64,000 nucleotides of DNA, taken from positions 10,168,001 through 10,232,000 of the forward strand of contig JANJGN010000037.1 of NCBI GenBank assembly GCA_026770705.1, read 5' to 3'. The position numbers and the translations under genes are program-made. Source of the stretch: Isurus oxyrinchus. Taxonomy: Eukaryota. The notes under the pieces were generated by a model that did not search any database, was not told where the DNA came from, and worked only from the letters and a program-made list of their open reading frames with translations. Each line of letters begins with the position of its first letter. Positions within the stretch are counted from its first letter, which is position 1. Shown in pieces: positions 11,008 to 56,249 of this stretch.

Positions 11008-11330
11008 GGGGGTGGTGATGGTGTCGCGGTAATATCACAGGACTAGCAATTCAAGGGGACTAGACTAATGCTCTTGGGGACATGGGTTCAAATCCCACCA
11101 TGACCACTAATGGAATTTAGATTAAATTAATAAAAATCTGGAGTATAAAGCCAGTCTCAGTAATAGTGACTATGAAACTATCAGCTCATCTAGTTCACTA
11201 ATGTCCTCCTTTTAGGAAGTAACGTGGTTGATTCTTAACTGCCCTGGGAAATGGCCTAGCAAGTCACTCACATGGGCACCAAATGCTGGCCTTGCCAGTG
11301 ATGCTCACATCCCATGAAAGAATAAATAAT
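11008..11330 (+). mobile_element. tRNA-derived SINE (head+tail derivative of the LINE at 41263-44419)
   Basis: B box ggttcaaatccc; body matches 44140-44419; tail aaatgctggccttgccagtgatgctcacatcccatgaaagaataaa matches the LINE 3' end. Confidence 0.8.
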
Positions 11331-11672
11331 GTTGTCTAGGACAGGATAGGATAGGTCATATCAATCTATAACCATACAGAGCTGTTTCATCTGTGCTAAG
11401 AAACACTGGGTGGGATTTTTCCCTCAGTGCACTAAGTGCGATGGCGGGCATGAAAATCGGCATTTTACCCTCCGGCTGCAGTGGTGGGTTTTTGCACCGT
11501 ATTGTCTGCTTCCTGCCTCATTAAATATGCACGCATGGGAAACATGCCGGAACGCTAGTGGGCAACCTCTGATTTGCCTGCCTCACTGTGAGCTCACTGC
11601 TTCCTCACTGGGCGCCATATGTAGCAACACTGAGTATTCTCAATGTCTGTAGCCCAGGACTGCTGCACTGAC

Positions 11673-13070
11673 ATGGCCCTGAAAGCCAAGAAGACGGCAG
11701 CCCCCAAATTCAGTGATACCTCAGTGGAGCGCTTTTTGGATGCAGTTGAGGCCTACTGTGATGTCCTCTACCCCTGCTGTGGCTGCAGGAGGTCCAGCAA
11801 GCTCAGCAATCTGGCTTGGGAGGCGGTGGTAGCAGTGGTCAGTGCCAATGCTACACAGAAGAGGTCAGGCACCCAGTGCAGAAAGAGGGTGAGTGATCTC
11901 ATCCATGCTACCAGGGTAAGTCAACTCTCATCACTTTCAACTCACAAGCCCATCACACATTCACTGGCACATCACTCACTGCCAGCTCAAAGGACATCAC
12001 CATTCACTCTCACACACACCCTCTCATCTCCGAGGTCGGTTGCAAACACCTACATGAGGATCCTACGCCGTGCACTCATTACCTCTGCTTTCTTTCATAG
12101 GAACCTCAACCTAGTGCCTGATGGCCTCAATCAACCCAGCCAACCCTTAGCACTAGCCCCGACGACACCTCGGATGAGGATCCTGAGGACACAGCAGAAA
12201 ACCTGTCACTGCACTCACCCATACCCTCCAACAGCGCAGAGACATACACCTTGTTGGGACTTCGCTCTAGAGCAGCCTCAGGGTCACAATCTAGTGAGCA
12301 CAGCACACATTTTGGTCCACAGCAGGCAGAGGCAGGGACATCCAAGGTCACTGGCACTTGTAGCACTGCTGGAGGCCAGGATTCTTCTGAGCCCGAGTCA
12401 GATGACGAGCGTCCGGACTCGGTCCTAACTTAGTTGGTGGAGCTGCAGGGGCAATCATGGGAACATCAGGAAGGGGTGTCAGCTGCATCCCTCGGATTGC
12501 TACGGACGATGGAGGAGTCTGTGTTCATTCTGAGGTGATAACGCTGGCATGCCAACTCACTAAGGTCAACAGCGGCAGGATCGCAGCTGCCATGGAGACC
12601 TTGGCCCAGGGCAGAGGTCCTACCCTGGTGGACGAGCTGCACTCATCACTGTAGCCATTGGTGGCATCCATCAGTGGCCATACGAGAGGGGGGGGCGGGC
12701 ATCTTAATCTCACTCCAGCTGCCCTTTCTCCTCAAGGAGTCAGCCAGAGGGCCCAGGCACCCAAAGGGAGGAGGACCAGATGGACACCCCGGGGCCATCC
12801 ACCCTGGTGACTCTAGGAGTGCCCAGCCGAACCCAATCCCTTCTTCCTGTGACTCCAGCATCTCTGACTCCACTGGCTGAAGAGGGTCCACCTGCCCTAC
12901 AGCAGGACACCCAAAACAGGTTGCGGCTCTCCAGGTCTCGGCCCTCTAGAGGATGCCCACTAAAGTCTTCACAGACAACAGGCATAGCAGTCAGCAGCTG
13001 CCTCCACCGTCGCTGTGGATGTCGGAGATGCACTCAAACGTAATTATAGGGTTAGGAAAGTAAAAAAAAC
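11673..13070 (+). pseudogene. Harbinger Myb/SANT-like protein gene (exon 2 deleted)
   Basis: MALKAKKTAAPKFSDTSVERFLDAVEAYCDVLY...AWEAVVAVVSANATQKRSGTQCRKRVSDL; donor GTAAGT at 11916; acceptor tttcatag at 12100. Confidence 0.8.
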
Positions 13071-14171: not shown

Positions 14172-15440
14172 TCACTGCAACTTGTCATCCTCCTTGTGGA
14201 ATCTGGTTGCTATGAGGACCTCAGGCACAAACCTGCCTTGTCTGGCTGGTGCTGTGAGCTGCTCCCCTGCAGCCTCGGCTTCCTTGAACTCAATGCCCTC
14301 ATCCCCTTCGATGTCCTCCTCATCGGAGGAGACATGCAGCTTCTCCATATCGGCGTCTGGTTTGTCCTCCCCTCATGTTGTGCAGTGCACAGAAAGCCAC
14401 GATGATCCGTGAGAGCCTCTGGGGACTGTACTGGAGTGCTCCGCCAGATCTGTCCAGGGATTGGAATCACACTTTTTAGACGTCTATGGTCTGCTCCACC
14501 AATGCTCGGTTAGTGGCATGAGCATCATTGTACCTTCTCTCTGCAGGATTCTGTGGCCACTGCATGGGTGCTATCAGCCACATCCTTTGCAGGTATCCCT
14601 TGCCACTGAGGAGCCAACCCTGGATTCTGCATGGTCCTCTGAAGATGTTTGGATCTGTGATCTATTCAAGATATATGAGTTGTGGACGCTTCCTTGGTAT
14701 CTGGCAGAAGGCTGCATGATAGGTTTCTGATGGTTGCAGACCAGCTGTACATTGAGTGAGTGGAACTCTTTCCTGTTTATATGTTGGAGTGCTTGTTGCC
14801 AAGGAGCTTTTAGAGCCACATGAGTGCAGTTGATGGCACCCTGCACCTGTGGGAATCTGGAAATTGCTGCAAAACCCACTGCTCTGGCAACCTGGCTTGC
14901 TTGATCTCTGTTGAAGTTGATGTAATTGTGGGCCTTGGCTAAAAGGGCGTCTATCACCTCATGTGCTTGGTCATTTGAGAGATCCCTCAGAGGCCTCCAG
15001 TAGAGCCCTGGAAGGAACCTGTTATGTAGAACTTCAGTGCGGTGGTTACTATCACAGCCAGTGGCAATAGGTGCCCTCCAAGTTCCTGTGGCGCCAATTC
15101 CTGGAGAATGTGGCAAATTTGAGTCACCAGATCTCTGGACATGTGGAGGCATTGGCGACACTGTCTCTCACTCATCTGCAGATAAGACATGCGAGTTCTG
15201 CACAATCTCGGTCTTGCGAGGTGCCTATGCATGATGTCTCTGTGAACCTCATCCTCTGCGTCTGGAGGGGCCTTTGCTGACCCTTGGTTTTCAGGGTTTA
15301 GCTTCTCCCTTTGGTGAGCCTGGTGCCTCCATCGTAATAATCTTCTCCTGCCTGTATGTGATTATGCAGGCAGCAATAAATCTTCCTGATGGTCTCCTCT
15401 TTGCAGCATCGATGAGAAACGGACATGAGTCAGCATGAGC
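14172..15440 (-). pseudogene. Harbinger (HARBI1-type) DDE transposase, frameshifted
   Basis: FPQVQGAINCTHVALKAP..INRKEFHSLNVQLVCNH..ARYQGSVHNSYIL; HTH region LPLAVIVTTALKFYITGSFQ; acidic C-terminus ending KEDDKLQ* at 14172. Confidence 0.9.
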
Positions 15441-24505: not shown

Positions 24506-25531
24506 ATGGGTCCTGGTGACCTAGCTGTATGCTTAATGGCCTACAGGGACCGTAGAAGACTAAGGAGAGAGCAGCTGAGGCTCCTGGCTGTGCAAAGGCA
24601 GGAGCAGCAATCTCATGAAGGGGCAGCCACGCTGCCCAGGAGCGACAGGGAGCCATGGCTGGTCGGCACCTAGCAACACCAGCGCCTATAGACGCCGCCT
24701 GTCATTCCTGCAGCTGATTGAGAACCAGTGTCAAAACGACTGCGCATGTCTAGGGATCTGGTGGCTCACATCTGCCACTTTCTGCAGGACTTGGTGCCAA
24801 GGGGACATGGAGGGCATCCACTGTCAGTGGCTGTGAAAGTGACCATGGCACTCAATTTCTATGCCACTGGCTCCTTTCAGGGCTCCAGAGGTGACCTCTG
24901 GGTGTTCACAATCCGCCACCCACAAATGCATCCATAAGCTCACGGATACCATCTTCTCCATGGCCCACAACTTTGTGCATTTCGCAGGGACGAGGACATC
25001 CAGGATGCAAGAGCCTTTGAATTTGCCCTGATCTCGGAATTCCCACAGGTGCAGGGTGTGATCAGCTGCACTCCTGTGGCGCTCAGGTCTCTGTCACTAC
25101 TCTCGGTGGACTTCCATCAACTGCAAGGGCTTCCACTCACTGAACATGAAGCTGGTGTACAACCACCAGAAATGCATCCTGCAGGCGTGTGCCGGTTTCC
25201 AGGGAGTGTGCACCACGTCTTCATCCTCAGTCGCTCGCAAATCCCTTCAGTCTTCCAGGGTCCACAGAGGCTGCAGGGTTGGCTCCTTGGGGACAAGGGC
25301 TACCCACAGAGGCTGTGGCTGATGACACCTGTGCGGCGGCCTCAGACTGCAGCAGCTCGCAACTTGGTGGAGCAGACCATTGGGATGCTGAGGATGCGGT
25401 TCCGGTGCCTGGACCGGTCAGGTGGTGTCCTGCAATACAGTCAGCAGAGGGTGTCACGTGTCATCGTCGTCTCCTGCGCCCTTTACGACCTGGCGCTGCA
25501 ACAGGGAGAAGAGCTGGCTGAGGAGGAGATA
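24506..25531 (+). pseudogene. Harbinger DDE transposase body (its last codons lie at 23819-23880 on -)
   Basis: LSVAVKVTMALNFYATGSFQ; GWLLGDKGYP..WLMTP; RNLVEQTIGMLRMRFRCLD. Confidence 0.9.
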
Positions 25532-26032
25532 GGCCTTTATTCTCTGCCCCCCCCCCACCACTGACCACCGACAGTGGTGACCTCCGAAGCTGGCCAGCAC
25601 TTGTCCCCAGACAACCCCCCCCAGCAGTCACCTCCGGGGCCAGGCATCAGTTGCCCCGACGCCCCTGAGGCCTGTAAACAACAGGCGAGCTGTGGAGAAA
25701 GCTGCTGCTCACTCACCTCAGCTCCCCAAAGTGAAGGCCGCCATTTGCACGTCACCTCCGTGCTGTTGTGAGGCACATCAGCGTGCTTTCCCGCCGAAGA
25801 GGATGGACGATGTGGCGGGGTTCCAAGATCCTGGTGGGCTGGCCTTTTAATTTTATGCTGATGTATTGCAATCAATTCACTGCTGTCCAATGGCAGTAAA
25901 CGCGGCACGCTGTTGGCGGGCTGAACGGACGATCACGGCCTGCCTTCATGCCCTCGTGAAGCCGGTCGCACCATATTTTCCATGCACGCCACCTATCACA
26001 CCCGCCGCCAGCATGCTTGGAAAATTCCACCC

Positions 26033-28904: not shown

Positions 28905-29620
28905 TCCATAGAATCACAGAAGCTGTACAAAAGAAAGCCATTTTGGTTCATTGGGTCTGTGTTGGCTCTTTGTAAGAGCAATCCAGAACTTGTCTCCCTG
29001 TTCAGTTATCTCCCCTCTGCCCTAGCTGTACTTCCACTGCTTCAATTATGTATTAATGCTTTGGTTTCTGCTTCAACTTTTCCCTGTGGGAAAACATTCC
29101 ATTCTCCAGCAAATCTCTGCATCAAGAAATTTCTCCTAACCTCTCTCCTCACCATCTTAGTGAGAGTAAAGTTGGAGGCAGTGGTGTAGTGGTATTATCT
29201 CCAGACTATTACTCCAGGTACCCAGGGTTTTGCTCTGGGGACCTGTGTTCAAATTCCACCATGGCAGAATTTAATTTTAAAAATTTGGAATTAAAAGTTT
29301 AATGATGACTATGAACCCACTGTTAATTGCTGTAAACCCCATCTGGTTCGCTAATGTCCTTTAGGGAAGGAAATCTGCCGTCCTTACCTGGTCTGGCCTA
29401 CGTGTGACTCCAAACCCACAGCACTGTGGTTGACTTTTAAAAATAGGAAGGCAATATATGCTGGCCCAGCCAGTGATGCCACACCCCATGAACAAATAAA
29501 AAAAAATGTTTTAAACTGATGACCCCTTGTTACTGATTTCCCCAACTGAAATATATATCCCCTGTTCATCCTATCACAAGTCTTCCTAGTTGCAAAAACC
29601 TCTTAACTCTCTCCTCATCA
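28905..29620 (-). mobile_element. Degenerate CR1 3' fragment interrupted by a SINE
   Basis: catagaatcacagaa tail; ctctgcatcaagaaatttctcctaac; resumes at ttaaactgatgaccccttgt after the SINE. Confidence 0.55.
29175..29506 (+). mobile_element. tRNA-derived SINE (same family as 11008)
   Basis: A box tggtgtagtgg, B box gttcaaattcc, LINE-derived tail and poly(A). Confidence 0.85.
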
Positions 29621-34361: not shown

Positions 34362-37110
34362 TCACAGTATCTTTACAGTGCAGAAGGCGGTCATTCGGCC
34401 CATCCAGTCTGCACTGGCTGTCTGAAAGAGCATTCCACCCAGTCCCAAGCCCCTTGCCTTATCCCCGTAACCTTGCACATTCTTTCTTTTCAGGCAGCAA
34501 TCCAATTCCCTTTTGAATATCTCGATCGAACCTGCCTCCACCGCCCATTCAGGAAATTTGTTCCAGACTCCAACCACCCTCTGGATGAAAATTTTTTTGC
34601 TCATCACATTTACCCCTTTTGTCAATTATTTTGAATCTGTGTCCTCTAGTTCTTGATGCTCTCTTGAATGGGAACAGTTTCTCACTATTTATCCTGTCCA
34701 TACTCCTCAGGATCTTGAATATCTCTTATCAAGTCTCCTCTCAGCCTTCTTTTCTCCAAGGAAAACAGCCCCAACCTCACTAATCTACCCTCATAGCTAC
34801 AGTTCTTTATCTCTGGGATCTTTCCTGTGAATCTCCTCTGTACTCTCTCCAATGCCTTCACATCCTTCCTCAAGTATGGCGCCCAAAACTGGACGCAGTA
34901 CTCCAGATGAGGCCTAATTAGCGTCTTACACAAGTTCAACATGATCTCCTTATTCTTCTACTCAATGCCCCCATTAATAAAGCTGAAGATACCACATGCT
35001 TTATTAACTGCTCTCTCAACATGCCCTGCCATCTTCAGTGACCTTTGTACGTATACACTGAGGTCCCTCTGTTCCTATACCTCCTTTAGAGGCTTTCCCT
35101 TTATTTCATACTCACCATATCTTTCCTGCCAAAATGAATCACCTTACACTTCTCTGCATTGAGCTTCATCTGCCACTTGTCTGCCCAATCCACCAACATG
35201 TCTATGTCCTTTTGAAGTTCAAGACTATCCCGATCAGAGTTGACAACATTTCCAATCTTTGTATCATCTGCAAAATTTGAAATCATGCCCTGTACACCAC
35301 AGACTAGGTCATTAATATATATCAGGAAGAGCAAGGGTGCCAACACTAACTCCTTGGGAACTCCACGACAAATCTTCTTCCAATCTGAAAAACAACCATT
35401 TATCACTACTCTCTGTTTCCTGTCACTCAGCCAATTTCTTATCTAAGTGCCAACTTTCCCTTTTATTCCATGACCTAGAATTTTGCTCACAAGTCTGTTG
35501 CGTGGCATTGTATCAAATGCCTTTTGAAAATCCATATATGCCGCAGCAACAGCGTTGCCCTCATCAACTTTCTCTGTTACCTTCTCAAAAAACTCCAGCA
35601 AGTTAGTCAAACATGATTTTCCCTTGATGAATCCATGCTGACTTTCCTTAATTATCCTACACTTGTCTAAGTGACTATTGATTTTATCCCGTACTATAGT
35701 TTCCAGAAGTTTCCCTACCACTGAAGTTAAACTGACTGGCCTGTATTGGCCAGCTTTATCCCTTGTACCCCTTTTTGAAAAAGGGTGTAATATTTGCAAT
35801 TCCCAGTCCTCTGGCACTTCCCCTGTGTCTAAGGAGGACTCGAAGATTATCACTGGTGCTTCTGCAATTTCCACTTTCACTTCCCTCAGTACCCTTGGGC
35901 CCATCTCATCCAGTCCTGGTACATTATCTATTTTAAGTAAAGATGGCTTTTACAACACCACCTTCCTCTCAGTTGTAAGTTCTTCTAGTGTACCAGTTAC
36001 CTCCTCTCTCACCTTGGCCTGGGTGGCAAGTTCTTCTTTGTAAAGACAGATCCAAAGTACTCATTTAACAGTTCTGCTATTTCTCCAGCCTGCACATGCA
36101 AGTCCCCTTTTTGTGCCCCTAATCAGCCCTACTCTTTCTTTTACCACCCTTTTATTATTTACATGCTTATATAAGACCTTGGGATTCCTTTTTATGTTCG
36201 TTGTCAGCCTCTTTACATGCTCTATCCTTGCTTCTCTAATTAGTTTCTTCACTTCCCCTCTGGTCCTTCTTTATTCATCCTGATTCTCCATTGTATTTTC
36301 TACCTGACATCTGTCATACACGCACTTCTTCCTTTTCATCTTTATCTCTATCTCTCTCGTCATCTGGATTTATTTGTCCTACCTTTCCTCTTCAAGGGAA
36401 TATATCTCGACTTTGCCTGCAATACTTTTCCTTTAAAGGTGGCCCATTGTTCAGCCACCATCTTTTCTGCCAACATTTGATTCCAACTCGCTCGACTCAG
36501 ATGCATTCTTATCCCATCGAAGTTGGCTTTCCCCCAATTAATTATCTCTGCTCTGGATTGTTCCCTGTTCTTTTCCATGATTAACCTAAACCTTATGATA
36601 CAATGGTCACTGTCCCCTAGATGCTCTCCCACTAATATTTAATCCACTGGGCCAACTCATTCCCCAGAACGATGTCCAAAAGTGCATGTCCTCCATTGGA
36701 ATGGAAACATATTGCTGCAGAAAATTATCTTGAATACACTCCAGGAACACTCCTCTTGTCCCTTTGCACTATTCTTATGCCAGTATATATTTGGATAATT
36801 GAAGTCCCCCATTATGGTTACTCTATAATTCTTGCACCTCTCTGTAATTCCTTTGCAAATTTATTTCTCTACATGCCTTCCACTAATTGGTGGTCTATAT
36901 ACTACACCAATCAATGTTATTTCACCTTTTTCATTCCTTGCCTCTAGCCAGAGAGATTCCATCCTTGACCTCTGTGGAACATCCTCTCTCTCCAGTACTG
37001 TAATGCCATCTTTAATCAATATTGCCAATATTCCCCCTTCCCCCACCCCACCCCCATCCCCATTCTTCCTTCCCTGTCTCTCCTTAACACCTTGTATCCA
37101 GGATTACTAT
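34362..37110 (-). mobile_element. CR1 LINE, 5'-truncated, decayed ORF2 (APE + RT) and 3' UTR
   Basis: APE fragments (GVVYRPP, HLGDSDH); RT motifs YRPVSLTSVVGKLLE, QHGF, YMDFQKAFD, GVPKELVLAP, FADDTK; multiple frameshifts. Confidence 0.95.
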
Positions 37111-40236: not shown

Positions 40237-40905
40237 GGAACATAGGAACAGGAGTAGGCCATTCAACTCGTTGAGCCTGCTCCGCCATTCAGTTAGATCA
40301 TGACTGATCATTTACCTCAGCACCATTCTCCACACTATCTCCATATTCCTTGATGTCATTGGTCTCCAGAAATCTATCGATAGATTTCTGCTTGAACATG
40401 CTGAATGATTGAGCTCCCACAGCCCTCTGAGGTAGAGAATTCCAAAGATTCATCGCCCTCTTATTGAAGAAATTCCCCCTCATCTCAGCCTTAAATGACC
40501 TAGCCCTTATTCTGAGAATATGTCCCCTGGCTCTAGACTCCCCAGTCAGGGGAAACATCCTATCAATATCTATGCCCTTTAAGAGTTACGTAAGTTTCAA
40601 TGAGATCACCTCTCATTCTTTGAAACTCCAGAGAATACAGGCCCAGTTTCTTCAATCGCTCCTCATAGGACAGACCCAACATCCTAGGGATTAGTGTGGT
40701 GAACCCCTGTTGCATTCTCTCTATGGGCAAGTACATCCTTCCTTAAATAAGGAGATGAAAACTGTACATAATGCTCCAGGTGCGGACTCACCAAGGCTCT
40801 ATATAATTGCAGCAAGGTATCTTTGCTCCTCTGCTCTTGTTGTGATGAAGGCCAGTATACCATTTGCCTTCCTTATTGATTGCTGCACCTGCATGCTAGT
40901 TTTAA
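40237..40905 (-). mobile_element. CR1 LINE 3' fragment
   Basis: FPLTGESRARGH..FFNKRAMNLWNSLPQRAV; caggaacataggaacaggagtaggccattc tail. Confidence 0.9.
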
Positions 40906-41262
40906 GTTCCAATTTTCTCTCCACCTCTGTGAAATCGCTAACTTTTCCTGGTGAAATGGTTCCAGAGGTGCTGATCAGCCCTCCAGTACCTTGACCAAGT
41001 AACTATTATTTATGCATGAAGTTTGTTAGTAATGCCTTGAAATTCAATAATGTATTAAGAGTTGAATTTGCTGATGCTCTACAGAGCTGAATGTGCCAGA
41101 ATGTTGTGGGTCTGCTTATTTGTAGGACGGCTTTCAGTGCCTGAATCCTGTGTAAAACAGGAGTAAGGTGCTGGGGGTGCTTAGCAGTCAGAGTGGAGTC
41201 TTGGAAAAGCTGCTTCTGGGTAAACAGTGCAGATGCAGATAAATGGGATAGTTTTTTTAAAT

Positions 41263-44200
41263 TCATTTACGGGCATCACTGGCTAGGCCAGTATTTGTTG
41301 CCCATCCCTAATTGCCCTTGAGAAGTTGGTGGTGAGCTGCCTTCTTGAACTGCTGCATTCTGTGTGGTGTAGGTACATCCGCAGTGCTGTTAGGAGGGGA
41401 CTTCCAGGATTTTGATCCAGCGATAGTGTAGGAATGGTGCCAAGTCAGGATGTGAGTGGCTTGGAGGGGAACTTCTAGGTGGTGGTGTTCCCAAGTATCT
41501 GCTGCGCTGGTCCTTCTAGATGGTAGTGGGTTGGAAGGTGCTGTCTAAGGAGCTTTGGTGAGTTTCTGCAGTGCATCTTGTAGATGGTACACACAAATGC
41601 CACTGTTCGTTGGTGGTAGAGGGAGTGAATGTTTGTGGAAGGGGTGTAAGTCAAGCAGGCTGCTTTGTCCTGGATGGTGTCAAGCTTCTTGAGTTGTTGG
41701 AGCTGCACTCGTCTTGGAAAGCGGAGAGTATTCCAGCAGACTCTTGTAGATGGTGGACAGACTTTGGGGAGTCAGGTGGTGAGTTACTCGCCACAGGATT
41801 CCTAGCCTCTGACCAGCTCTTATAGCCACAGTATTTATATGGCTAGTCCAGTTCAGTTTCTGGGCAATGGTAACTCCCAGGAAGTTGATAGTAAGGGAAT
41901 CAGCGATGGTTATGTCATTGAATGTCAAGGGGCGATGGTTAGATTCTCTCATGTTGGGGATGGTCATTACCTGGCACTTGTGTGGCTCAAATGTTACCTA
42001 CCACTTGTCAGCCCATGCCTGGATATTGTCCAGATCTTGCTGCATTTGGACATGGTCTGCTTTCAGTATCTGAGGAGTCGGGAATGGTGCTGAACATTGT
42101 GCAATCATCAGCAAACACCCCCACTTCTGACCTTATGATGAAAGGAAGGTCATTGATGAAGCAGCTGAAGATGTTTGGGCCTAAGACATTAACCTGAGGA
42201 ACTCCCGCAGTGATGTCTTGAAACTGAGATGATTGACCTCCAACAACCAGAACCATCTGTCTTTGTGTCAGATATGACTCCAACCAGTGGAGAGTTCCCC
42301 TCGCCCCCCTGATTCCCATTGACCAGTTTTGCCAGGGCTCCTTGATGCCAAACATGATCAAATACTGCCTTGATGCCAAGGGCAGTCACTCTCACCTCAC
42401 CTCAGGAGTTCAGCTCTTTTGTCCATGTTTGAACCAAGGTTGTAATGAGGTCAGAAGCTGAGTGACCCTGGCAGAACCCAAGCTGAGCATCAGTGAGCAG
42501 GTTATTGCTGAGCAAGGGTCACTTGATAACACTGTTGATGACCTCTTCTATTACTTTACTGATGATGGAGAGTAGACTGATGGAGTGGTAATTGGCCAGG
42601 TTGGATTTGTCCTGCTTTTTGTGTACAGGACACACCTAGGCAATTTTCCACATTGCCAGGTAGATGCCTGTGTTGTAGCTGTACTGGAACAACTTGGCTC
42701 GGGGTGCAGCAAGTTCTGGAGCACAAGCCTTCAATACTATTGCTGGAATACTGTCAGGCCCATAACCTTTGCGGTATCCAGTGCCTTCAGCCGTTCCTTG
42801 ATATCATGTGGAGTGAATCTAATTGTCTGAAGACTGGCACCTGTGTTTCTGGGGACCTCCAGAGGAGGTCGAGATGGGTCATCTACTCAGCACTTATGGC
42901 TGAAGATTGTTGCGAATGCTTCAGTCTTATCTTTTGTACTGATGTGCTGGGCTCCCCCATAATTGAGGATGGGGAGATTTGTAGAGCCTTATCCCTAGTG
43001 AGATGTTTAATTGTCCACCACCATTCACGACTGGATGTGACAGGACTGTAGAGCTTAGATCTGATCTGTTGGTTGTGGAATCGCTTAGCTCTGTCAATCA
43101 CTTGCTACTTATGCTGTTTGGCACACAAGTAGTCCTGTGTTAAAGCTTCAGCAGGTTGACACCTCATTTTTAAGTGTGCCTGGTGCTGCTCCTGGCATGC
43201 CCTCCTGCACTCTTCACTGAACTAGGGTTGATCCCCTGGCTTGGTGTTAATGGTAGAGTGGGAGATATGCTGGACCGTGAGCTACAGATTGTGGTTGAGT
43301 ACAATTCTCCTGCTGCTGATGGCCCACAGTACCTCACAGTTGCCCTGTTTTGAGTTGCTAGATCAGTCTGAAATTTATCCCATTTAGCACGGTGGTAGTG
43401 CCACACAACACTATGGAGGGTATCCTCAATGTGTTTGTCTACAAGGACTGTGCGTTGGTCACTCCTCCTGATACTGTCATCAACAGATGTGTCTGCAGCA
43501 GGTAGGTTGGTGAGGTGAAGTATGCTTTTCCCTCTTGTTGGTTCCCTCATCATCTGCCGCAGACCCAGTCTCACAGCTATGTCCTTTAGGACTCAGCCAG
43601 CGATGGCACTACCAAGCCACTCTTGGTGGTGGACATTGAAGTCCCCCACCCAGAGTACATTCTGTGCCCTTGCCACCCTCTGCTTCTTCTAAGTGTTGTT
43701 CAACGTGGAGGAGTACTAATTCATCAGCTGAAGGAGGGCAGTATGAGGTAATCATTGCCATGAGACTTCATGGGGGCTGGAGTAGACGTTGAGGACTCCC
43801 AGGGCAACTCCCTCCCGACAGTGTACCACTGTGCCATCACATCTGCTTGGTCTGTTCTACCGATGGGACAGGAGATAACCCAGGAATGGTGATGGTGGTG
43901 TTTGGAACATGATTCTGTGAGTATGACTATGTCAGGCTGTTGCTAGACCAGTCTGTGAGAAAGCTCTCTCAATTCTGGCACAAGCCCCCAGATATTAGCA
44001 AGGAGGACTTTGCAGTGTTGACAGGGCCTGGGTTTGCCATTGTCATTTCCGGTGCCTAGGTCGATGCTGGGTGGTCTGTCCAGTTTCATTCCTTTTTATT
44101 GACTTTGTAGCAGCTTGATATAGCTGAGTGGCTTGGCCATTTAAGAGTCAACCACATTATTGTGGATTTGGAGTCATATGTAGGCCAGACCAGGTAAGAG

Positions 44201-44419
44201 CATCAGATTTCCTTCCCTAAAGGGCATTAGTGAAGCAGATGGGTTTTTGCAACAATCAACATTGGTTTCATGGTCATCATTAGACTTTTAATTCTACATT
44301 TTTGTTGAATTCAAATTCCACCACCTGCCATGATGGCATTCAAACCCGGGTCCCCAGACCATTATTCTGGGTCTCTGATTTCCAGTCCAGTGACAATACC
44401 ACTATGCCACTGCCTCCCC
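41263..44419 (-). mobile_element. Apparently full-length single-ORF LINE (APE-RT) with a tRNA-like 5' head
   Basis: A box at 44399-44409 and B box at 44335-44346 (-). ATG at 44089 is in frame with KVLLANIWGL..PDIVILTES (APE). Also VGDFNV, SDQ (for SDH), GVPQVNVLGP and FADD. The 3' tail is shared with the SINEs. Confidence 0.85.
41400..44089 (-). pseudogene. APE endonuclease-reverse transcriptase ORF, disrupted by stops and frameshifts
   Basis: Collinear fragments 43170-43574, 42883-43101, 42008-42379, 41680-41967 and 41475-41708. Confidence 0.85.
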
Positions 44420-44552
44420 TATGTGCATTCAGTTCACTGTCAAGCAACTGGATGGCTCATCTATGGTTTTTATCCCATTTTGTTCCATCTGGCGTACAGT
44501 AGCATTAGGTAATGTTACTGAACTAGTTCAAATCCCGCCAACACAGCTGTTG

Positions 44553-45016
44553 TCAGCCGTGACTCAGTTGGTAGCACTACCCGCTTCTGAGTCAGAAGGT
44601 TATGTGTTCATTCCAGAGACTTGAGCATAAAATATAGGCTGGCAGTCCAGTGAAGTACTGAGGGAATGCAGCAATGAAGGACATACCTCCTTTCAATTGA
44701 GATGTTTAAATGAGGCTTGTTTGCTCCCTCAGGTGGACGTAAAAGATCCCATGACACTATTCCAAAGAAAAGCAGGGGAGTTCAGCTCCGGTGTCCTGGT
44801 GAATATTTATCCTTTAATGAACATTATTAAAACAGATTATCTGGACATTACCTCATTGCTGTTTGCGTGAGCTTGCTGTGCCTAAATTGGCTGCCATCCT
44901 TCCTGTGTTACAACAGTGACTACATTTCAACAAAACGTATTTAATTGGCTTTAAAGCGTTTTGGAATGTCCTGAGATCGTGAAAGGCACTGTATAAATGC
45001 ATGTCTTTCTTTCTTT
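44553..45016 (+). mobile_element. Deu-domain tRNA SINE (SacSINE1-like)
   Basis: tRNA-like head gactcagttggtagcac; central ctcaggtggacgtaaaagatcccatg..agcaggggagtt; tail tataaatgcatgtctttcttct. Confidence 0.75.
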
Positions 45017-50900: not shown

Positions 50901-51087
50901 CTTGCCTGTTTCACTATTCCAACTCCACCTCATTTCCAATTTCCTTTTGTTTTTGCATGCCATTTCACTTCCTGTTCTGAAACATTTGAGCTCATTAACA
51001 GCCAATGCATGATATTTGTCAACATCCCAGACTCTGCACTTGTTATTCACCCCTCCCTTCTTCGTTTAGTGCCATTTTGCTCAGGTT

Positions 51088-51432
51088 AGGGGAAACAGCG
51101 GCGTAATGGGAATGTCACTGGGCTAGCAATCCAGCGATTCAGGCTAATGTTCTGGGGGCACAGATTCAAATCCCACAACTGGTGGAATTTAAATTCAATT
51201 AAAAATAACCTGATTGAATTGAAAGCCAGTCTTAGTAATGACGGCCATGACAACTAGCATCGATTGTCATAAAAATCCATCTGCTTCACTAATGCTCACC
51301 TGGCCTGGCTTACATGTGACTTGATACCCACAGCAGTGTAGGTGACTCTTAACTGCCCTCTGAAATAGTCTACCAAGCCATTCAGTTCAAAGGCAATTAG
51401 GGATGGGCAACATATGCTAGTGCTGCCAGCAA
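51088..51432 (+). mobile_element. tRNA-derived SINE (same family as 11008)
   Basis: A/B boxes cggcgtaatgg / gattcaaatccc; junction caagccattcagtt-caaaggcaattagggatgggcaac. Confidence 0.85.
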
Positions 51433-55830: not shown

Positions 55831-56249
55831 TTGATTATACTTTTCCCCTTTCTGGCCTGACTCCATCTCCATGTTCCTATTTCTCTTAATCCTCTGGTTT
55901 CCTGGCTGAGAAGGTGAGTGAGTTATTTTTTTCTTCGGCCTCTGTCAATAAGATAGCTTGTTTTTTAATTTTTTTTTCATGAGATGTGGGTGTCTCTGGC
56001 TAGGCCAGCATTTGTTGCCCATCCCTAATTTCCATTGAGAAGGTGTGTAAGAATGGCTTGGGTGACGTTCTAGCCAATTTCTCTCTTCTCTCTCATTCTC
56101 TCTCTCTTTGGGGTGACGTCTGGCTCCACTTGACATCTTCTGTGACAGCGTGGACAACATTGGAAACTCCCCGTAATGGGAAACTTGAACCCGCTCTCAC
56201 ATGGTGAACCTACCAGTTCAATGAATTACTTTACCACTCAGGTAATAAC

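Follow-up and report, generated by a model that had tools for sequence, protein, structure and literature searches.

We describe here a LINE copy whose 5′ end is made up of the head and body of a local SINE. It lies on the minus strand (44419–41252) of the window, by which we mean the whole 64-kb stretch of shark DNA analysed, and it belongs to a very abundant shark LINE, of which it is an old and dead copy. Our best explanation, held with moderate confidence, is that it represents an L2-type single-ORF LINE subfamily whose 5′ end is a SINE head acquired by capture, the full-length form being known here from this one copy. Its parts are co-linear on one strand, with 24 nt between the SINE likeness and the start codon, and it begins at the point where the SINE copies begin; against this explanation, the unit is without a bracketing target-site duplication.

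Results

Structure of the element

Read from the sequence, the element is a single co-linear LINE copy of ~3.17 kb, in which a head with A and B boxes is followed by a SINE body, the ATG at 44089, a decayed frame of putative endonuclease and reverse transcriptase (RT) with an FADD motif and a tail common with the local SINEs. The parts are as follows:

44335–44419, minus strand: tRNA-related SINE head with A and B boxes; the local SINE copies have their 5′ end at the same point (nhmmer, alignment)
44141–44334, minus strand: SINE body, 70–79% identical to the SINE copies in the window
44114–44140, minus strand: segment X, ..AAGCCACTCAG..TCAAG, also present in the 51k and 11k SINE copies
44090–44113, minus strand: 24-nt leader of LINE sequence only, reaching from the SINE-like part to the start codon
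41683–44089, minus strand: decayed single endonuclease and RT frame, with ATG at 44089 and FADD at 42115–42104 (three-frame translation)
41252–41320, minus strand: 3′ tail common with SINEs, GGGCAATTAGGG..., with a stem-loop around CTGGCCTAGCCAG; the A run at 41258–41252 ends the tail

A preliminary description of this DNA had ended the element at 41263. The true end is the A run, and the extra stretch adds no run of four Ts (T4). Its statements about the sequence were each checked and, as a whole, the observations were confirmed. Its interpretation fared less evenly: head, body, single frame and tail do form one co-linear unit, but the term "autonomous" does not hold for this copy and the T4 argument is weak.

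The A box (TGGCATAGTGG) at 44409–44399 and the B box (GGTTTGAATGCC) at 44346–44335 correspond to element positions 11–21 and 74–85, respectively. Both are present where they had been reported, close to the 5′ end and spaced much as in a tRNA gene. ARAGORN found no tRNA genes in the whole window, and a comparison with Rfam found no match to a tRNA, whether at E ≤ 1 (40500–45000) or at E ≤ 10 (44310–44440), so that no tRNA cloverleaf was recovered for the head, whose predicted fold has a z-score of −1.3. The head is thus to be called tRNA-related by its boxes only, and it provides what is, as judged from sequence, a Pol III-type internal promoter. Alignments of the SINE copies by nhmmer begin at model positions 1–13, that is, their starts coincide with the 5′ end of the element.

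At the SINE/LINE junction the SINE tail is absent when the sequences are laid side by side. No second tail was seen 3′ of the element and no SINE remnant past the LINE 3′ end. With the SINE part tailless and a single tail for the whole element, a SINE that simply inserted next to a LINE does not account for the unit. L2-type elements often make no target-site duplication, and a search for one bracketing the whole unit found none. The 24-nt leader has no match elsewhere in the 64-kb window.

Reading frame and clade

The ATG at 44089 starts a frame of 48 codons (MKLDRPPS...ANIWGL...) that is closed by a stop, and three-frame translation shows the remaining endonuclease/RT frame to be interrupted by many stops and frame changes. 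The least-interrupted frame, followed in 180-nt windows, switches repeatedly along the element, and coding remnants were traced as far as 41683. The many stops and frame changes mean that the copy is dead, which is why "autonomous" fails for it. The preliminary description had also led the ATG in frame into an APE N-terminus, with the RT following. The ATG and the FADD motif are both there; the endonuclease motifs were read by eye in the translation, the two pieces tried having no Pfam match. It was right that no room is left for an ORF1, the SINE likeness stopping at 44114, 24 nt before the ATG; no ORF1-like frame was found within 2 kb upstream of the element. The lack of an ORF1 is ordinary for the L2 clade; ZfL2-2, according to the accessible text of PMC4176376, has only ORF2 and yet retrotransposes.

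The RT piece, which carries the FADD motif, matches Pfam RVT_1 with E 4.7e-6 and 26.9 bits, under the Pfam cut-off of 29.6 because the copy is broken. Protein searches gave 11 matches to related RT fragments (82–171 aa, 70–79% identity) and 8 matches to the linker piece (2 at E ≤ 1e-10, with related fragments at 65%), whereas the 48-aa N-terminal piece yielded no candidate; all the matches were short, and none was to an intact protein of the family. The LINE is L2-type by its tail, the label resting on the likeness of that tail to the tail of a SINE that is called L2-like in the available part of PMC5499810.

Relation to the local SINEs and to other copies

The local SINE, whose body is putatively Deu-like (SacSINE1), consists of the element's first ~306 nt and last ~60 nt with nothing between them, so that the short element comprises both ends of the long one, as in a bipartite pair. 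Besides the element's head, the window holds four SINE copies. Three of them (29174–29441, 33604–33337 and 51087–51295) are 70–79% identical to the element's SINE body, and the fourth, at 11010–11247, was located by nhmmer. The element's tail is 90–91% identical to four SINE or tail copies in the window. LINE and partner SINE thus have a 3′ stem-loop tail in common; the stem-loop is predicted, with a fold z-score of −0.7 that is not unusual in itself. Segment X carries an ATG (44140) in frame with the ATG at 44089, and a TAA at 44098–44096 closes that frame. In a tail copy at 55988–56046, an X-like stretch adjoins a longer 3′ UTR-like stretch. This raised the idea that segment X is part of the LINE 3′ UTR, but upstream of ..CTTCTCAAGGG the two sequences, compared by eye, are hardly more alike than chance would make them.

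Public sequencing runs, all of them stored as contigs and hence not able to show transcript starts or strands, indicate a huge and mostly 5′-truncated LINE family. Records matching the family at a likeness of at least 80 number 581,397 in run X1 and 363,088 in run X7; contig depth figures were not taken as copy numbers. Joints of the SINE form, from 41320/41321 to 44138–44141 and skipping ~2,817 nt, occur in contigs of all four public runs, the joint 41320 to 44138 in 33, 22, 6 and 5 contigs. One other contig (record 24, X17, 408 nt) has the same junction between SINE body and ORF; it covers 43909–44176, reaching 63 letters into the SINE part and 205 into the LINE part. No relative of the RT piece was found among metagenome or viral contigs, nor any exact match to a 20-nt tail motif among viral, genome and metagenome contigs; these collections apparently contain no shark DNA.

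Runs of T in the sense strand

The sense strand contains no run of at least four Ts, compared with 13 such runs of A, 10 of C and 9 of G, in agreement with the zero sense and about 13 antisense runs reported previously. In the control LINE at 34362–37110, for which ~10 sense T4 runs had been given, we counted 11. When the shuffling comparison that had been suggested was run, a T4 deficit was present, but for a single copy P ranges from 0.04 to 0.27 depending on the null. Dinucleotide shuffling expects 3.0 runs (P 0.04), an order-1 Markov model 3.1 (P 0.05), an order-2 model 1.3 (P 0.27), and codon and synonymous shuffling over 563 codons 2.4 (P ~0.06; synonymous 0.057); mononucleotide shuffling expects 5.9 (P 0.0015). 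The chance that a T run is extended falls stepwise (0.176, 0.114, 0), compared with 0.276, 0.261 and 0.269 for A runs.

Ordinary coding bias explains much of this lack, because T stands at only 15% of first codon positions and the TTC:TTT ratio for Phe (10:5) is like the corresponding ratios for Tyr (8:4) and His (14:6). No sense T4 is created by any of the 32 majority differences among the 40 family differences listed (there are 663 further rows). The decayed SINE copies in the window did gain T4, with 4 runs in 1,298 nt, in two of the four copies. Decay of 10–15% would be expected to add about 2–3 T4 runs to a T4-free master, so the exact zero is partly luck. Moreover, copies of one master are not independent, and one master lineage therefore amounts to one sample. 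For one copy the argument from missing T4 is weak, and the lack is only suggestive.

Discussion

Our best explanation is that the headed form is a propagating LINE subfamily in which the captured SINE head would serve as the 5′ untranslated region. The entire unit would have been reverse-transcribed from a single RNA starting at the SINE's start site. Capture may have occurred by template switching or by the joining of two RNAs, with the product then being amplified; SINE copies that match both ends of the headed LINE may themselves derive from it by internal deletion. A SINE of this kind is known from chimaeras and coelacanth too (PMC5499810, in the part available), so the SINE is probably older than the composite, and for this reason a derivation from the LINE fails for the SINE family as a whole.

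Within this explanation is nested a stronger one, in which the A and B boxes drive Pol III transcription over ~3.1 kb, the sense strand is kept T4-free by selection and the protein is made from uncapped RNA or in trans via rare Pol II transcripts. The boxes lie at tRNA-like positions, the unit begins where SINE copies begin, and the absence of T4 with stepwise thinning of T runs, the 2.4 runs expected under synonymous shuffling, the majority differences that create none and the T4 gained by decayed SINE copies all fit such selection. This is tempered by the coding bias, by the single sample with its dependence on the null, and by a B box that differs from its counterpart in the 33k SINE copy, so that full-length RNA made by Pol III is possible but on the unlikely side. 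The headed copies could instead be dead-on-arrival insertions, formed when the LINE RT at the 5′ end of the LINE RNA jumped to SINE RNA or when the two RNAs had been joined first, an account to which we give only tentative credence. SINE/LINE chimeras are known, a start at the SINE RNA 5′ end is predicted here as well, and segment X and TCAAG sit at the break; if the LINE 5′ end has segment X like the SINE, a homology-guided switch would recur at the same junction without any headed master. A chimera of the Alu/L1 type is recognised by a complete SINE with its tail, joined to a LINE of any length, and a target-site duplication around both parts. In the present unit the SINE tail is absent, unlike in the mostly full-length Alu of known chimeras, and the duplication was not found. 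The LINE part is also full length in the window copy and, to judge from record 24, there too, whereas LINE lengths in the L1 case mirror the usual truncated spread.

Descent could also have run in the other direction, as in Kojima's bipartite model, with the body, segment X or both belonging from the outset to the LINE as its 5′ untranslated region, the SINE being assembled from a tRNA head, the LINE 5′ part and the LINE 3′ tail, and headed LINEs arising later by recombination through the common part. The SINE does correspond to the 5′ part of the element joined to the 3′ tail, the ATG within segment X is in frame with the LINE start codon, and exactly such an origin for SINE bodies is proposed in the accessible text of PMC5786205; the cases given there are limited to RTE and Vingi LINEs, however, and an in-frame ATG arises by accident with a chance of ~1 in 6, so we consider this reading improbable. 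More improbable still is a coincidence in which a full-length LINE inserted, in matching orientation, into an older SINE copy whose remaining part was lost. SINE copies are common, and no target-site duplication delimits the unit, but no SINE remnant follows the LINE and a second copy (record 24) has the same junction.

A LINE family bearing its SINE's promoter head would blur the division in the usual view, where LINEs are Pol II genes and SINEs are Pol III parasites that borrow only the LINE tail. It would be a concrete case of LINE 5′ end renewal by recombination with other RNAs, and would offer a route to new SINE subfamilies via internal deletion. At its furthest reach, which we regard as a rather unlikely conjecture, a whole shark LINE subfamily would have had its 5′ end swapped for a tRNA-SINE head and would be copied by Pol III over ~3.1 kb, its sense strand kept T4-free and its protein made from uncapped RNA or from rare Pol II transcripts of sister copies, with new SINE subfamilies budding by internal deletion. 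In effect, a retrotransposon that codes for protein would then behave like a giant SINE, and if Pol III truly makes its RNA, we would have one of the rare examples in nature of a long Pol III transcript that codes for protein. Gunnery and Mathews reportedly studied the translation of Pol III transcripts in 1995, B2 is said to act as a Pol II promoter in work by Ferrigno of 2001, and non-canonical Pol III termination was reportedly treated by Orioli in 2011. If, on the other hand, template switching yields the headed copies as a by-product, what we describe is reduced to a frequent chimera of a kind already seen in Alu/L1.

No description of an autonomous LINE with a tRNA-type head was found in open PubMed Central papers and bioRxiv. 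The closest relatives of the SINE part appear to lie among the Deu-SINEs, reportedly a subject of Nishihara's work of 2006. SacSINE1/LmeSINE1-type Deu-SINEs with an L2 partner resemble the local SINE in having a tRNA-related A/B box head, a conserved body and a tail common with an L2-type LINE, and they likewise reach very high copy number in cartilaginous fishes (PMC5499810, part seen). In the same part of that source, LINE and SINE are described as having only the tail in common, whereas the LINE copy described here also has the SINE head and body.

Elements such as ingi and RIME form a bipartite pair. In bipartite non-autonomous LINEs generally, the short element is made of the 5′ and 3′ parts of the long one, as it is here (Kojima 2018, PMC5786205, accessible text). 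Within that text such systems are reported only in the RTE, Vingi, Ingi and R2 clades, and the LINE there is without a tRNA head. The LINE in our window differs on the latter point.

"Stringent" L2-clade LINEs, UnaL2 among them, have one endonuclease/RT frame and no ORF1, as appears to be the case here, and a 3′ stem-loop tail that is recognised by the protein; for the present element the stem-loop is predicted from sequence. ZfL2-2 has these features too, and at ~4.2 kb has a repeat-bearing 5′ UTR for which the accessible part of PMC4176376 describes no tRNA-type head, whereas our element is headed.

Alu/LINE-1 and U6/LINE-1 chimeras likewise have a sense Pol III transcript joined 5′ of a LINE, the two having inserted together (Law and Burns preprint; PMC4476161, both in part), and the authors of the preprint speculate that chimera events renew LINE 5′ UTRs. 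The Alu/LINE-1 chimeras are scattered, mostly truncated one-offs with a complete Alu, whereas here a tailless SINE precedes a full-length LINE, in a form that seems to recur. Finally, Cassandra, Helenus and Ajax (PMC10886601, accessible text) also contain Pol III-gene-like sequence inside a retroelement; those are non-autonomous LTR elements, whereas the element described here is a protein-coding LINE.

Structure of the element

The minus strand from 44419 to 41252 reads as a single unit, a LINE copy of about 3.17 kb and probably of L2 type, with its parts in the order head, body, segment X, leader, frame and tail. The preliminary description had placed it at 41263-44419. Its 5' boundary and unity hold, but the end lies at 41252, as the A run had been missed by a few letters.

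Parts of the element
44409-44399 and 44346-44335, minus: A box TGGCATAGTGG and B box GGTTTGAATGCC of a tRNA-related head (sequence)
ending at 44141, minus: SINE body (sequence)
44140-44114, minus: segment X, last letters TCAAG (sequence)
44113-44090, minus: LINE-only leader, 24 nt (sequence)
from ATG 44089, minus: endonuclease-like N-terminus, MKLDRPPS...ANIWGL (translation)
42115-42104, minus: FADD of the reverse transcriptase (translation, Pfam)
41320-41252, minus: 3' tail, predicted stem-loop and A run (sequence, fold prediction)

The boxed head, ATG 44089, the reverse transcriptase frame with its endonuclease-like N-terminus and FADD, and the tail are all present as first described. The reverse transcriptase piece matches Pfam RVT_1 at E 4.7e-6, beneath the curated cut-off. 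ARAGORN found no tRNA gene in the 64-kb window and Rfam no tRNA match in the head, so the head reads as tRNA-like through its A and B boxes alone; across the whole window, no Rfam match reached the gathering score. This copy is dead. The frame opened by ATG 44089 is 48 codons long before its first stop, and the least interrupted of the three frames changes repeatedly along the element. No target-site duplication surrounds it. The reported lack of ORF1 stands in that nothing ORF1-like occurs in the 2 kb upstream, but this is ordinary, because the L2 group includes elements, ZfL2-2 among them, that retrotranspose with a single ORF (PMC4176376).

A further ATG (44140-44138), within segment X, shares the frame of ATG 44089; 14 sense codons and a TAA separate the two, and the TAA (44098-44096) is two codons upstream of ATG 44089. 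In intact copies the frame start might fall within the SINE-shared part. The shared tail (41252-41330, minus) is open in one frame (..GQLGMGNKYWPSQ), and the LINE frame of intact copies may extend into it.

Relation to the local SINE

Head and body recur as four additional copies in the window (29174-29441, 33604-33335, 51089-51358 and 11010-11247), three of them at 70-79% identity to the element by BLAST, and its last ~50 nt recur at four places at 90-91%. Placed side by side, the SINE corresponds to the element's first ~306 nt plus its last ~60 nt. At 51 kb the SINE copy matches the element up to and including ..CCAAGCCATTCAG..TCAA, where it jumps to GGCAATTAGGG, a sequence found 2.8 kb downstream in the element. 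The element's SINE part lacks a separate tail, and beyond the LINE 3' end there is no second one. A plain SINE insertion beside the LINE is therefore ruled out, and a LINE nested inside an older SINE is unlikely on the same grounds.

A further repeat at 55988-56046, extending upstream to ~56120 (minus), bears the same GGAAATTAGGG.. tail. Preceding it are a longer stretch resembling a LINE 3' UTR, a GA-rich run and CCAAGCCATTC, which resembles X. The repeat may represent a different SINE subfamily or else a sister-subfamily LINE that has been truncated. Remnants of Harbinger/PIF-type DNA transposons are suggested elsewhere by open frames at 11643-12428, 14574-15161 and 25049-25564, which match DDE_Tnp_4 (1.4e-9, 6.1e-13) and, weakly and below the cut-off, Myb/SANT-like domains (E 0.0035).

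Family-level evidence from contigs

Logan contigs from four runs, two guessed to be DNA and two RNA, were aligned to 41000-44700 at 80% likeness. The family is enormous, with 581,397 (X1), 363,088 (X7), 22,488 (X15) and 9,887 (X17) aligned records. SINE-form joints from 41320/41321 to 44138-44141 were present in all four runs, the joint 41320 to 44138 in 33, 22, 6 and 5 contigs. Record 24 of X17 (408 nt) covers 43909-44176: it starts in the last part of the SINE body, crosses X and continues into the frame, placing 63 letters on the SINE side of the junction and 205 on the LINE side. At least one further copy therefore has the same SINE-body-to-frame junction. Contigs carry no RNA starts, strands or levels, so these alignments are uninformative on the polymerase.

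The element's 3' flank is single-copy. Organism B shares the insertion, as judged by the 3' junction only: record 25 of X7 crosses that junction, has 40 of its letters within the element and differs at 5 of 303 positions. The insertion therefore predates the divergence of two closely related species. At the 5' end, record 32 extends no more than 24 letters into the element, under the 31-letter rule, and was not counted. The 5' flank (44596-44700) is repeated, with a summed contig depth of 17,514 (X1) versus 48-64 in the 3' flank, and the element appears to lie inside or adjoining another repeat. At 41263-41275, 1,784 X1 and 1,381 X7 records part from this copy at 41271 into a longer, different 3' end and a long A run, so the extreme 3' end of this copy is unlike the family's usual one. 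The tail motif had no exact match in three contig collections, apparently without shark DNA, scans of metagenome and viral contigs for loci related to the reverse transcriptase piece gave no relative, and protein searches with the element's pieces matched fragments only.

Absence of sense T4 runs

Our recount agrees with the reported absence of T4 (runs of at least four T, the Pol III terminator) on the sense strand: sense runs of at least four number 0 for T, 13 for A, 10 for C and 9 for G. The control LINE (34362-37110) has 11 T4. The element has fewer T4 than shuffled expectation, but how surprising zero is varies with the null model.

Expected T4 and probability of zero under each null
Mononucleotide shuffle: 5.9; 0.0015
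Dinucleotide shuffle: 3.0; 0.04
Order-1 Markov: 3.1; 0.05
Order-2 Markov: 1.3; 0.27
Codon shuffle, 563 codons: 2.4; 0.056
Synonymous shuffle, 563 codons: 2.4; 0.057

The last two nulls used six coding pieces, two of which share 41 nt; extrapolated to the complete frame, these shuffles predict about 4 T4. The thinning of T runs is partly plain coding bias. The chance of extending a T run is 0.176, 0.114 and 0 with growing length, with A flat at ~0.27; first codon positions are 15% T, and TTC:TTT (10:5) is similar to TAC:TAT (8:4) and CAC:CAT (14:6). A T4-free master decayed by 10-15% should gain 1.9-2.9 T4, and the four dead SINE copies in the window did gain 4 in 1,298 nt; an exact zero in a dead copy is thus partly luck, whichever model is adopted. 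Among 40 listed differences from the family majority, with 663 others besides, 32 lie inside the element and none of these creates a sense T4. One master's sequence is common to its copies, and many T4-poor copies are therefore not many tests. The lack of T4 fits Pol III read-through and is suggestive, not decisive. The control LINE is a second, unrelated remnant (minus; RVT_1 1.5e-11 at 35446-35904), with a very C-poor sense strand (13% C, no C4 run).

Discussion

Our results confirm the preliminary observation and partly support its interpretation. The element was probably copied from a single RNA starting at the SINE's start site, since the unit begins where SINE copies begin and ends in the LINE's tail. 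Such RNA could be produced repeatedly by a headed master, an active LINE carrying the SINE head as its own 5' end, or template switching or ligation could join SINE RNA afresh to LINE RNA with every insertion. We prefer the headed master, at roughly an even chance, because the SINE part is tail-less, the LINE part is full-length and a second copy has the same junction. Fresh joining is a less probable alternative, though a homology-guided switch via segment X could imitate all of these features. Reverse descent on Kojima's model, in which the body or X would be the LINE's own 5' UTR, is improbable; Kojima 2018 (PMC5786205) found LINE 5' parts within SINE bodies only for RTE and Vingi. Set beside a junction found in a second copy, mere coincidence is more improbable still.

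Given a headed master, Pol III would be the simplest account of initiation at the SINE's first base. Protein might be made, inefficiently, from the same RNA, or sister copies transcribed by Pol II might supply it in trans; the latter is plausible, as the tail is recognised by L2-type proteins (PMC4176376). Overall, full-length Pol III transcription is possible but less likely than not. A single copy cannot decide either question. A headed master, if borne out among copies, would be of real interest to transposon biologists, and Pol III transcription, if true, of high interest.

We found no description of an autonomous LINE with a tRNA-type head in the literature covered, open PubMed Central papers and bioRxiv. 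In chimaera, sharks and coelacanth, SINEs of this kind and an L2 LINE have a tail in common (PMC5499810); there, in the excerpted text, the LINE partner shares the tail and a shared head goes unmentioned, whereas here the LINE also carries the SINE head. The bipartite derivatives listed in PMC5786205 are confined to RTE, Ingi, Vingi and R2; the same paper remarks that Pol II and Pol III signals may conflict. Alu/L1 chimeras, 113 of them catalogued and mostly sense, have been proposed as a route by which LINEs acquire new 5' ends (Law and Burns preprint). The element is a variation on the LINE/SINE partnership and on LINE chimeras, both known kinds.
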